Below are positions 37,502 through 54,781 of a stretch of DNA of 64,000 nucleotides, one piece after another. The notes beneath the pieces are model-generated. The model made no database searches, was not told where the DNA came from, and saw nothing but the letters and a program-made list of their open reading frames with translations. A program made the translations under genes and the position numbers. Position 1 is the stretch's first letter. Each line of letters starts with the position of its first letter. The DNA lies in the sequence record NC_041878.1. One strand, 5' to 3'.

Positions 37502-37699
37502 ATGCAAAAAGAACCACGTTTGACGCCTAAATATTGGGCTGCACATGATTCACGTACTGATGATCTACTAATCAGTACTATGTTTAAACACCGTCAAGAT
37601 ACCTATGATCAACTGGTATCAATGTTCGGGGAAAATTGGGAAGAAACACATCCTCATTTTCAAATAGATTTGGTTGAACTCAAACTAGTTCAGCAATAA
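37502..37699 (+). CDS. hypothetical protein
   Basis: Co-oriented ORF. Confidence 0.7.
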   Translation: MQKEPRLTPKYWAAHDSRTDDLLISTMFKHRQDTYDQLVSMFGENWEETHPHFQIDLVELKLVQQ

Positions 37700-37708
37700 T
37701 GATCACTG

Positions 37709-37958
37709 ACCGTTGTTAGGATGTAGGCTTAGAAGCAGCCACATTTAAAGAGTGTCGAGGACGATCCGTAATTGGGAAACATATCACAAGTACCAAACGT
37801 ATAAGTTCAGGGGAAGAAAAGACCGGATACAGTTGTATTAATATGGTATACACGGGCGGCGTATACTTAATGACATGAATCGTAGGTGATATTACGTGAA
37901 GCGTTAGATGTTAATACAGACCCTTAGAGACTTTGGCGTAACAGCACACTATCAACGG
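37709..37958 (+). ncRNA. 23S rRNA GTPase-associated-centre (uL11-binding, H42-H44) mimic with ~181-nt insert
   Basis: AGGATGTAGGCTTAGAAGCAGCCACATTTAAAGAGTG...GCGTAACAGCACACT matches 23S nt ~1054-1105; closed by CCGTTG/CAACGG. Confidence 0.8.
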
Positions 37959-38002
37959 CTTTTTAATTGAGATTTTATTAACCATAGAAAGAGGAAATAA
38001 AA

Positions 38003-38341
38003 ATGGCACAATAGAATGAAAAAACTTGGATTTACGTATTTGTTCGCACGGATCTTCCGATTGAACAAATAGTAGTACAATCAAACCACGCAGCTTATGA
38101 AAGCGGCTTGGCCTTCGAAAATAACAGTACTGAGACTAGTTCTTTAATTGTTATTTCGTGTAAGAATAAACATAAGTTACAAAAAGCATATGATGAACTC
38201 AAAGATTCTGGTATTGACTTTGTTCAGTTCCATGAACCTGATTGGGATTATGGCTTCACCGCCTTTGCTAGTGCTCCTGTAACTGCTGAACAGCGTAGTA
38301 TCTTCCGTAAGTATCAATTATTCAAGGGAGGTGCTAAATGA
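38003..38341 (+). CDS. Pth2-like protein with in-frame TAG at codon 4
   Basis: SD GAGG, ATG GCA CAA TAG AAT...; IYVFVRTDLP..QIVVQSNHAA, FHEPD..YGFTA. Confidence 0.65.
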
Positions 38342-38904
38342 TTTATCCTAACACTTTCGAAGAATTACTACACGTAATGCAGAATACAGAACAAATGAAA
38401 GATCTTAGTGTACATGCACATGGTCTGATGGTTGTTGAGCAATATAAAGTACTAATTTCTGAATTAGACACTGGATAGGGCGATTCTGTACTACTTGAAG
38501 TATATGGTAAAATCAAAGATAAGATTCTACCAGATGAAATAGTACTACGATACCAGGAATATCATGATTGTGGTAAACCATTGTGTCGTGTAGTTGATGA
38601 AGATGGAAAAGTACATTTCCCTGATCACGCTAATATTAGTGCTGATACTTGGAAGCACTTATTCCCTGAAGAAACTGTCATTCAAGAGTTAATGCGAAAG
38701 GATATGACTTTTCACATGGCAAAATCGGAAGATTTTGAATCCATCTGGAATGATCCGTTAGCACCAACTTTATATTTGACAGCGTGGGCTGAAATACTCG
38801 CGAACTGCACAATGTTTGGTGGACAGGATAGTACATCTTTTAAAATCAAAAAGAAAAAACTAATCCAAGCGGGTAAAAAGTACTTAAACTCTTTGCCTAA
38901 ATAA
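38338..38904 (+). CDS. HD-domain protein with in-frame TAG (38476-38478)
   Basis: SD GGAGG, ATGA overlap; SVHAHG...TG*GD...YHDCGKP...HFPDHA. Confidence 0.7.
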
Positions 38905-41468: not shown

Positions 41469-41715
41469 TAGTGAAGTTTACAATGCAGCTATGATCTATC
41501 GTGAACTTCGTGCTAAACGTGGTTGTAGTAAAGATAAAAAGTACTGGAATACTGAATTAAGAATTCGTGTTGCAGTAGTTAATCATGAGATAATCATGAA
41601 TCGTGGAAAGGCTGGAACAGATAAAGAACGTCCTGAACTTCAGGATGCATATGATTATCTGGCTGAAGGTTTAAAAGAAGCCATGACTTATGCTGTTCCA
41701 CTTAAATGTCAGTAA
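41461..41715 (+). CDS. hypothetical protein
   Basis: Start moved to MTNSE. Confidence 0.7.
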   Translation: MTNSEVYNAAMIYRELRAKRGCSKDKKYWNTELRIRVAVVNHEIIMNRGKAGTDKERPELQDAYDYLAEGLKEAMTYAVPLKCQ

Positions 41716-41994: not shown

Positions 41995-42068
41995 GCCTTT
42001 GTAGCTCAGCGGTAGAGCGGGGATCTCTAAAATCCTTTGTCGTGGGTTCGAATCCCTCCATCGGCACA
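41995..42068 (+). tRNA. tRNA with CTA anticodon (amber suppressor candidate), Phe-like body
   Basis: GGGAT-CTCTAAA-ATCCT; canonical D arm; 2 acceptor and 1 T-stem mismatches. Confidence 0.7.
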
Positions 42069-42371: not shown

Positions 42372-42483
42372 GCATAAATGACGGAATTGGTAAACGTAGA
42401 GTCTGACAATAGCGAAAGCGACGATAGGACTTCGGGAGTAGCCGTGAGGTTCCCTTGTAGGTTCGAATCCTGCTTTATGCACC
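42372..42483 (+). ncRNA. class II tRNA-like RNA with anticodon loop replaced by ~22-nt insert
   Basis: GCATAAA/TTTATGC acceptor, D and T arms intact; GC-GAAA-GC in place of anticodon. Confidence 0.6.
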
Positions 42484-49423: not shown

Positions 49424-49548
49424 GGCGAGTTAGCTCAGTGGTAGAGCACGTATGAAACCCAGGATTCCTGTACTTGAATCCCGCAGCAACTATACTCTCA
49501 AGCCTTTTAAGCTCGTGGTCATTGGTTCGAATCCAATACTCGCCACCA
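49424..49548 (+). tRNA. tRNA-Lys(TTT) with 50-nt insert between nt 28 and 29
   Basis: Removing 49451-49500 leaves a 75-nt cloverleaf: CGAGC-CTTTTAA-GCTCG, ACCA. Confidence 0.75.
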
Positions 49549-54660: not shown

Positions 54661-54781
54661 GGGAAAGTAGCTCAGTTGGTAGAGCACGTATAGACGATTC
54701 TTGTAGTTGAATCTTACAGCAACCATACAATTGCATATATGAAAGCACGGTGTCATTGGTTCGAATCCAGTCTTTCCCACA
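54661..54781 (+). ncRNA. tRNA (Phe-like body) with 43-nt ACAGCAA insert and 10-nt loop
   Basis: GGGAAAG/CTTTCCC, canonical D and T arms; CG[54689-54731]TGC-ATATATGAAA-GCACG. Confidence 0.65.

Follow-up and report, generated by a model that had tools for sequence, protein, structure and literature searches.

A stretch of 64,000 nucleotides (nt) from sequence record NC_041878.1 (the window), corresponding to roughly genome positions 248,001-312,000 of Pectobacterium phage vB_PcaM_CBB (CBB; 378 kb, Mimasvirus), carries on its + strand at 37710-37958 an element that resembles the GTPase-associated centre (GAC) of 23S rRNA. The analysis below indicates that this element is very probably an RNA gene with the GAC fold and that it belongs to a family found in at least 190 distinct phage or prophage sequences. 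This family is widespread and also ancient, since the derived insertion site, the linker and A1101 are common to all members. EF-G, EF-Tu, IF2 and release factors are all brought to the ribosome by the GAC, on which the activation of RelA also depends. From its sequence features the family looks like a viral tool aimed at host translation, for which a role as a decoy of ribosomal protein uL11, or of the factors, is plausible.

The likeness to rRNA was established by comparing the element with the real Escherichia coli 23S gene, whose numbering is used here for all rRNA positions. Window positions 37715-37753 and 37936-37953 match 1051-1090 and 1091-1108, within which 37718-37753 and 37936-37950 correspond to 1054-1090 and 1091-1105, with G1062 at 37726, A1067 at 37731 and A1095 at 37940, and the CBB copy differs from E. 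coli by U1061A, the loss of U1078, G1089, U1097C and a swapped pair, U1090-A1101 (37753/37946), where E. coli has an A-U pair. This comparison was further strengthened by blastn, in which each of 5,426 E. coli genomes gave a match within its 23S gene, 35-38 nt long and 92-94% identical. A preliminary description of this DNA, made from the letters alone, had already pointed to helices 43 and 44 (H43 and H44) with their A1067 and A1095 loops and to a compensatory U-A at 1090/1101, and these claims hold. Its coordinates were correct overall with one-base boundary shifts (the insert splitting the rRNA-like sequence is 37754-37935), and the closing helix CCGTTG/CAACGG that it proposed is real but longer, pairing 37710-37719 with 37949-37958. 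The Rfam bacterial large-subunit rRNA (LSU) model aligned 37715-37774 with model positions 1092-1151; the score was weak (12.3 bits, E 0.13), as the alignment is interrupted by the insert. Within the 64 kb, the 15-mer GGCTTAGAAGCAGCC of the 1067 loop has a single exact occurrence, with shuffles giving 0.27 matches when 3 mismatches were allowed; a candidate second GAC copy at 41668 (3 mismatches) was rejected, as it lies inside a coding sequence and has no 3' half. The further claim that the domain is isolated is borne out by an Rfam scan of the window, in which 23 tRNAs were the sole matches and no other rRNA was found with the rRNA models, and by phage genes on both flanks; the element is thus not part of a contiguous 23S rRNA.

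The search of phage genomes for relatives, which the preliminary description had proposed as a check, returned at least 190 sequences in which the 1067 and 1095 loops are kept, with the caveat that the search patterns cover parts of these loops. Two pattern scans of viral contigs, one anchored on the 3' junction TTTGGCGTANNAGCNCAC and one on the 5' half alone, together gave at least 141 unique elements. The 3'-junction scan produced at least 120 contig matches, at least 95 of them with the 5' GAC half 90-410 nt upstream, and the matches listed for the 5'-half scan were nearly all such elements, with just 2-3 genuine rRNA genes among them. A third viral-contig scan, anchored only on the U1092-A1099 variant of H44, gave at least 51 unique elements, about 51 of them further members. 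Across 185,579 reference genomes, 30 of 57 pattern matches were complete elements, mostly on tRNA-rich contigs of metagenome-assembled genomes and some in isolates (Flintibacter muris, a Clostridiaceae strain and Bacterium D16-76), where they are probably prophage-borne. By blastn, the element was also found in the CBB relatives GAP32, Serratia BF, seven Erwinia phages, XbC2, XaC1 and fHe-Yen9-03/04, and in the unrelated phages Acinetobacter ME3, Xanthomonas XacN1, Aeromonas 4_4572, Pseudomonas pf16, UNO-G1W1, Astolliot and Milchi. The elements of cultured phages, from nine host genera, sit in unannotated gaps, mostly next to tRNAs, and the full range covers phages of Proteobacteria, Firmicutes, Bacteroidota, Bdellovibrionota, Chloroflexota and candidate phyla radiation (CPR) bacteria. 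Rfam 15 holds no family for any of 21 elements apart from the partial LSU match, and the full-text literature searched, including a search with the exact loop sequence and with subscription-only texts outside reach, contains no description of a phage GAC-like RNA. The family is therefore, as far as found, undescribed, being absent from Rfam and from the searchable literature.

The fold was examined in an alignment of 116 distinct insert-removed sequences, with shuffle and Fisher statistics that treat the sequences as independent and ignore phylogeny. Particular weight falls on the pairs 1058:1080, 1057:1081 and 1082:1086 and on the closing helix, which no search pattern anchors. Pair 1058:1080 is formed in 107 of 107 sequences as UA (46), GC (32), AU (21) or CG (5), against 38% in shuffles; 1057:1081 occurs as AU (95) or CG (13); 1082:1086, as UA (61), CG (31) or AU (14), is paired in 91% against 58% in shuffles; and the closing helix (1047-1055:1104-1112) is paired in 70-97% family-wide against about 40% in shuffles. 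G1087-C1102 in 114/116 and U1090-A1101 in 115/116 are nearly fixed, at positions that were partly constrained by the parser. G1059, U1060, A1077 and A1088 are invariant across the family, and the non-canonical features of the rRNA domain are retained as well, namely G/A1056.A1103, U1060.U1078(C), G1093.A1098 and U1060 with A1088. These patterns point clearly to selection acting on the GAC structure.

The strongest tertiary signature is the triple 1072/(1092:1099), which we take to be the base triple joining both hairpins of the real GAC, and which Conn, Gutell and Draper are said to have described in rRNA in 1998. C1072 is present in 83/83 sequences selected by their C1092-G1099, and U1072 in 49/51 of those that the third scan selected by their U1092-A1099 (Fisher p = 1e-34, uncorrected for phylogeny); the cultured phages ME3 and fHe-Yen9-04 likewise show the U1072/U1092-A1099 switch. 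Because the triple switches from C/C-G to U/U-A, the phage RNAs very probably adopt the tertiary structure of the GAC as well as its helices. The three-way junction, the 1067 and 1095 loop sequences (within the limits set by the anchors) and the tertiary signature are thus all found in the family, and the earlier proposal of a mimic at the RNA level is supported by secondary and tertiary covariation across the at least 190 phage sequences. This covariation argues that a chance match or an rRNA pseudogene is excluded. The related idea of a functionless piece of captured host rDNA, or of an assembly contaminant, draws on the real 23S rRNA held by some phage database records and is effectively refuted by the compensatory evolution across about 190 sequences, by derived features not found in rRNA (the insertion site, the UUUG linker and A1101) and by phage-DNA flanks in complete genomes. 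As a separate observation, genuine contiguous 23S rRNA was seen in records filed as phage, such as Paenibacillus phage Pd_22F (L008, 83.4-84.0 kb) and many records of 2-7 kb, where it is likely host contamination or misassembly.

The second defining feature of the family is the insert, which lies exactly at 1090/1091 in 138/141 elements, bracketed by U1090-A1101 and G1091-C1100, and ranges from 41 to 494 nt, with 34/138 inserts of 100 nt or less. At its three outermost positions the start of the insert pairs with the nucleotides just ahead of the linker, as GC, AU, UA or CG, in 99, 98 and 91% of the elements, and the linker that follows is UUUG in 128/138, UUUA in 5, UUAG in 2 and UUGG in 2. 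This architecture amounts to a three-way junction in which H44 can be coaxially stacked and the insert projects from its 5' strand. With no signature of a group I intron or known ribozyme, the insert is best read, on this comparative evidence, as a retained arm of the junction rather than as an intron.

Removal of the insert as an intervening sequence, by self-splicing, by an endonuclease and ligase or by RNase III-type cleavage without religation, would leave a mini-GAC of about 67 nt in one or two pieces, and this possibility deserves attention in view of the exact rRNA-like H44 that results when insert and linker are taken out. As at group I splice sites, U is invariably the last nucleotide of the 5' flank and G the usual last nucleotide of the insert (128/138), an RNA ligase gene adjoins the XacN1 element, and CBB has tRNA-like genes with inserts of 57-63 nt. 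We nevertheless consider it quite improbable, and the split or spliced reading given in the preliminary description is unlikely to stand. Intron_gpI and the ribozyme models gave no match at E up to 10 for CBB and pf16 or, for 19 other loci, at E up to 1 and 5. Inspection of the CBB insert found no complement of AAAGAGU near its 5' end that could act as an internal guide sequence. The two ends of the insert are paired together, and a good many inserts are not long enough: the terminal omega-G and size of about 200 nt expected of a group I intron contrast with a last nucleotide that is G in 132/138, A in 5 and another in one, and with a minimum of 41 nt. The RNase III-excised type fares no better, as the insert enters in mid-stem on one strand, has 3-4 conserved closing pairs, which make a poor RNase III substrate, and lies in no rRNA gene. 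In addition, U1090-A1101 is kept in 115/116, as expected if the junction itself is selected.

The inserts fall into several unrelated classes, each conserved internally and with pseudoknots, and a blastn comparison of every insert with a complete rrn operon yielded chance-level words, with no similarity to rRNA. This diversity, together with the presence of an insert in 138/141 members and of a hairpin like the sarcin-ricin loop (SRL) in one subclade, would fit a rather doubtful alternative in which the GAC is a compact, nuclease-resistant chassis, possibly coated with uL11, that stabilises and displays the variable insert, and the insert is the effector, be it an aptamer, a base-pairing RNA or a ribozyme. 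Such a cargo is hard to reconcile with the fact that only the GAC and the linker are common to all members and that the shortest inserts (41-60 nt) have no common motif, and a mere scaffold has no need of the strong conservation of the exposed 1067 and 1095 loops and of the triple. The SRL-like hairpin itself, (A)GUAC-GAGA/GGGA/AGAA-GGAA, was observed at about nt 224-237 in the inserts of one subclade only (L054, L075 and L127), and the L054 copy reproduces 11 nt of the universal SRL core exactly. A dual mimic of GAC and SRL was rejected for the family, as the inserts have no rRNA likeness and the hairpin is confined to these three loci.

In the CBB element, for which seven related phages could be compared, all parts lie on the + strand. 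The 5' strand of the closing helix (CCGUUGUUAG, 37710-37719) comprises the top of H42 (1051-1055) plus the non-rRNA extension and pairs with CUAUCAACGG (37949-37958) over 10 positions with one U.U; 6 of the 9 pairs show double compensatory changes. It is followed by the H43 mimic with the 1067 loop (37720-37744; G1056 and 1057-1081, U1078 being deleted in CBB), the 1082-1086 turn UUAAA (37745-37749), whose 1082:1086 pair covaries, and the 5' strand of H44, G1087 A1088 G1089 U1090 (37750-37753), which contributes to the family-wide pairs G1087-C1102 and U1090-A1101. The inserted structured domain (37754-37931), the third arm of the junction in H44 according to covariation among the seven phages, is joined to G1091 by the UUUG linker (37932-37935), after which come the top of H44 and the 1095 loop (37936-37948; G1091 C1092, GUAACA, G1099 C1100 A1101 C1102 A1103). 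Within the insert, a closing helix (37754-37756/37929-37931), GGAC/GUUC (37759-37762/37806-37809), AGGG/CCCU (37810-37813/37921-37924), UGUAUUAA/UUAAUACA (37834-37841/37911-37918), a GUAUAC/GUAUAC hairpin (37846-37851/37861-37866) and a 7-bp pseudoknot AUAUCAC/GUGAUAU (37781-37787/37886-37892) were assigned. The three insert helices proposed earlier are each backed by compensatory changes, one of them (ATATCAC/GTGATAT) being the pseudoknot, and three more were added. Overall, the structure of the CBB group comprises 52 pairs, with 93.6% of cells paired against 28-44% in slid-partner controls, and 23 pairs are altered on both sides. The fold given by RNAalifold for the GAC part (GCCA with UGGC, GAGU with ACUU) was discarded, its partners showing no family-wide covariation.

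Some GAC-like sequences depart from this architecture. Two IMG/VR contigs (L145 and L214) carry an insert-less 57-nt mini-GAC with the rRNA-like U1101 outside any rRNA gene, followed by a hairpin and a hydrophobic open reading frame (ORF) of 56 amino acids; this mini-GAC may be an independent capture or an ancestral form. An annotated 23S copy of E. coli NIPH17_0020 (L129, at 2.23 Mb) is missing 4 nt (AAAG, about 1087-1090) in H44 of its GAC, which reflects either genuine variation or a fault of the assembly.

The genomic setting links the element to tRNA genes. The CBB element lies in an unannotated gap of 408 nt between CBB_405 (stop at 37699) and CBB_406, amid 21-24 tRNA genes, all on the + strand, with small ORFs between them. 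Across 138 loci, ARAGORN called 744 tRNA genes, every one of which shares the strand of the element; a tRNA lies within 30 nt of 50/138 elements, with spacers of typically 2-19 nt, and a tmRNA is present in 5 loci. The same strand and the short spacers suggest that the RNA is produced in the manner of a tRNA, probably being co-transcribed and processed together with the phage tRNAs. At the CBB element no canonical promoter or terminator, and none above shuffle expectation, was found; a U-rich tail, CUUUUUAAU (37959-37967, + strand), is present in all CBB-like phages compared and may be a 3' end or a processing site. In XacN1 (L005), the element has a 2'-5' RNA ligase gene (640-1290) just upstream and is followed directly by a strong terminator-like hairpin and U-tract (1542-1583).

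No protein-coding gene recurs consistently beside the element. When ORFs within 3 kb were clustered all-against-all, the largest cluster covered 8/138 loci, so that a conserved protein partner was rejected. No cluster of ribosomal protein (r-protein) genes was seen beside the elements, whose neighbours are tRNAs and unrelated small ORFs, and the elements do not lie in the 5' untranslated region (UTR) of an r-protein gene, as an autoregulatory leader would. These results bear on the possibility of cis-regulation of downstream genes, for example by uL11-dependent attenuation or readthrough, which was suggested by the arrangement in CBB. There the element is directly upstream of two genes (38003-38341 and 38338-38904) that, as described earlier, are each interrupted by one in-frame TAG (38012-38014 and 38476-38478); the first is PTH2-like (Pfam E 0.002, below the cut-off) and keeps its TAG in GAP32, the second has HD-type motifs, and a tRNA(CUA) of the amber-suppressor type lies about 4 kb downstream (41995-42067). 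Loss of uL11 is moreover reported to weaken RF1 termination. Cis-regulation is nonetheless very unlikely indeed: beyond the lack of a conserved downstream gene and the tRNAs that typically flank the elements, in GAP32 and Serratia BF a further gene separates the element from the PTH2-like gene, and the proposed link to amber genes is confined to the CBB group, tRNA arrays being the family-wide setting. A tRNA(CUA) occurs in just 9/138 loci and suppressors make up 9/744 tRNAs, counted without a control set, so that an enrichment is unsupported and the association was set aside. A role in UAG readthrough or in blunting RelA is possible, with nothing in the analysis supporting it.

Taking these observations together, we tentatively favour a mechanism based on a putative stable non-coding RNA of about 250 nt, which is encoded in the tRNA-gene regions of many unrelated phages. 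This RNA very probably folds into a GAC copy that consists of the top of H42, the H43 hairpin and its 1067 loop, the turn at 1082-1086, the H44 hairpin and its 1095 loop, and the tertiary triple. A lineage-specific folded domain, grafted into H44 through the UUUG linker, would be kept in the mature RNA as a third arm. This RNA would probably act in trans as a molecular mimic of the base of the ribosomal stalk, binding uL11 most likely through the site of its C-terminal domain on the H43 stem, so that ribosomes would face competition for uL11 itself or for ligands recognising the uL11-GAC surface. The published interface of the uL11 C-terminal domain comprises nucleotides 1058-1060, 1062-1065, 1075-1083 and 1088, and the footprint of the N-terminal domain and thiostrepton comprises 1059-1064, 1068-1070 and 1095-1098 (PMC1802607). 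The C-terminal-domain interface nucleotides are invariant in the family or covary as in rRNA, and the main insertion site at 1090/1091 is outside both footprints; because the interface is kept and the insertion avoids it, a trans-acting mimic that binds uL11 is preferred, and the decoy mechanism as such, though the leading candidate, falls somewhat short of probable. Held with the same reserve is the broader notion that a dedicated GAC copy would serve as an off-ribosome uL11-RNA particle, or would capture the factors that read the GAC, and thereby reprogram or protect translation.

Several points weigh against this uL11-binding mimic. In a simple model of a uL11 sponge, the near-universal insert and the UUUG linker have no job, and titration may be slow given that uL11 is mostly ribosome-bound. 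A second inserted hairpin, frequently capped by a GAGCA-type loop, is found in the H43 mimic at 1077/1078 in about 13% of members (including L059, L014, L087, L114, L122, L091, L124, L088 and L047) and counts against uL11 binding because it falls inside the published footprint of the C-terminal domain. The loops that contact factors and thiostrepton are less constrained than in rRNA, since A1067 is G in 7/83 (8%) and 18/51 (35%) of two subsets and positions 1096/1097 vary, and the G at 1067 in this minority weakens the case for a strict mimic of the factor or thiostrepton site. The scans that collected the family were anchored on patterns, so that the member count is a minimum and part of the conservation within the anchors is due to the anchors themselves, and the minimum free energy z-scores (-1.06 on the + strand and -1.68 on the - strand) are uninformative.

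An alternative that would give the insertion site a role is a decoy or inhibitor of a host enzyme that attacks the GAC, a defence or toxin activity such as an RNase, an ADP-ribosyltransferase or a methylase acting on H43/H44, to which uL11 would be irrelevant. In this unlikely scenario, the helix at 1090/1091 might turn the mimic into a non-productive substrate, in keeping with an insertion site and linker that are near-universal and precisely placed. The Rhs toxin Tre23 reportedly ADP-ribosylates H44 of the GAC, so toxins directed at the GAC would exist, and the setting in tRNA arrays with tmRNA, CCA-adding enzyme, PTH2-like and RNA-ligase genes invites an analogy with phage tRNAs and their presumed role in substituting for, or protecting, the tRNAs that anticodon nucleases attack. 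We know of no phage-defence system directed at the GAC, however, and none was found in the literature searched; a stoichiometric decoy is also weak against a catalytic enzyme, and the extremely diverse hosts would demand an equally widespread toxin.

Other features of the window and of related genomes were noted alongside. A 45-amino-acid ORF lies within the CBB element on the opposite strand (37716-37853, -), and a coding sequence of 30 amino acids, CDS0239, is annotated within the element of Erwinia phage Kaldavass (L218 346-438); given the RNA-type covariation, both are probably spurious. Three tRNA-like genes of 110-122 nt on the + strand, at 49424-49545, 54661-54779 and 42372-42481, match the Rfam tRNA model at 50.2, 47.6 and 37.3 bits, respectively, and are not called by ARAGORN. 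Alignments of the first two show normal acceptor, D and T arms and an anticodon arm swapped for a 57-63-nt insert, and these insert-bearing genes are further translation RNAs of CBB with an inserted domain.

Comparison with known systems places the family more precisely. With the GAC of 23S rRNA (E. coli 1051-1108, the 58-nt RNA that binds uL11 and thiostrepton) it shares near-identical 1067 and 1095 loops, the three-way junction, the non-canonical pairs, the covarying pairs 1058:1080 and 1082:1086 and the triple 1072/(1092:1099), whereas the phage element stands alone with an arbitrary closing helix and U1090-A1101, carries a domain of 41-494 nt with a UUUG linker at 1090/1091 and in some members the 1077/1078 hairpin, and has G in place of A1067 in a sizeable minority. 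R-protein leaders, such as the L10 leader and the L1 site in the L11-operon mRNA, also reproduce the rRNA site of an r-protein off the ribosome; they are cis-acting 5' UTRs of cellular operons with local likeness to rRNA only, while the phage element is a stand-alone viral RNA gene that copies a whole rRNA domain almost base for base. The stable RNAs of phage tRNA clusters (tRNAs, tmRNA and the T4 species 1 and 2 RNAs, which are stable RNAs from the tRNA cluster of T4) share with the element its strand, short spacers and location in a region of translation tools, and probably also its transcription and processing, but the element mimics rRNA and is not tRNA-like. Ligand mimicry and titration of a partner, as proposed here, recall the decoy RNAs 6S RNA, CsrB/RsmZ and the pseudo-ToxI of phage PhiTE; the phage element differs in copying an rRNA domain, and its partner is only proposed. 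Intervening sequences and expansion segments of rRNA are likewise closed by a helix, vary in length and occupy a set position in a helix of the rRNA type. The known bacterial intervening sequences, however, take the place of the hairpin tips of H25 and H45 within genuine 23S genes, where they build long duplexes cut by RNase III, in contrast to the phage insert in the 5' strand of H44 with its 3-4 conserved closing pairs and conserved single-stranded linker.

Translation genes already known from viruses encode tRNAs, tmRNA, ribosomal proteins and translation factors; as far as found, a stand-alone copy of a functional rRNA domain had not been described in a virus. If the proposed reading is true, the family would be the first virus-encoded mimic of an rRNA domain, again as far as found, and its possible effects would include blunted activation of RelA, a shifted balance of RF1 and RF2, or a neutralised defence directed at the GAC. 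Independently of its partner, the family is a natural experiment on the GAC fold that reveals which nucleotide variation is tolerated and which sites accept extra domains, and it may find use as a compact RNA scaffold for binding uL11. Tractable systems are at hand in pf16 with Pseudomonas putida, CBB with Pectobacterium, ME3 with Acinetobacter and XacN1 with Xanthomonas, and the family thereby provides a testable handle on how phages control elongation, termination or the stringent response, or else on a so far unrecognised host activity that attacks the GAC.

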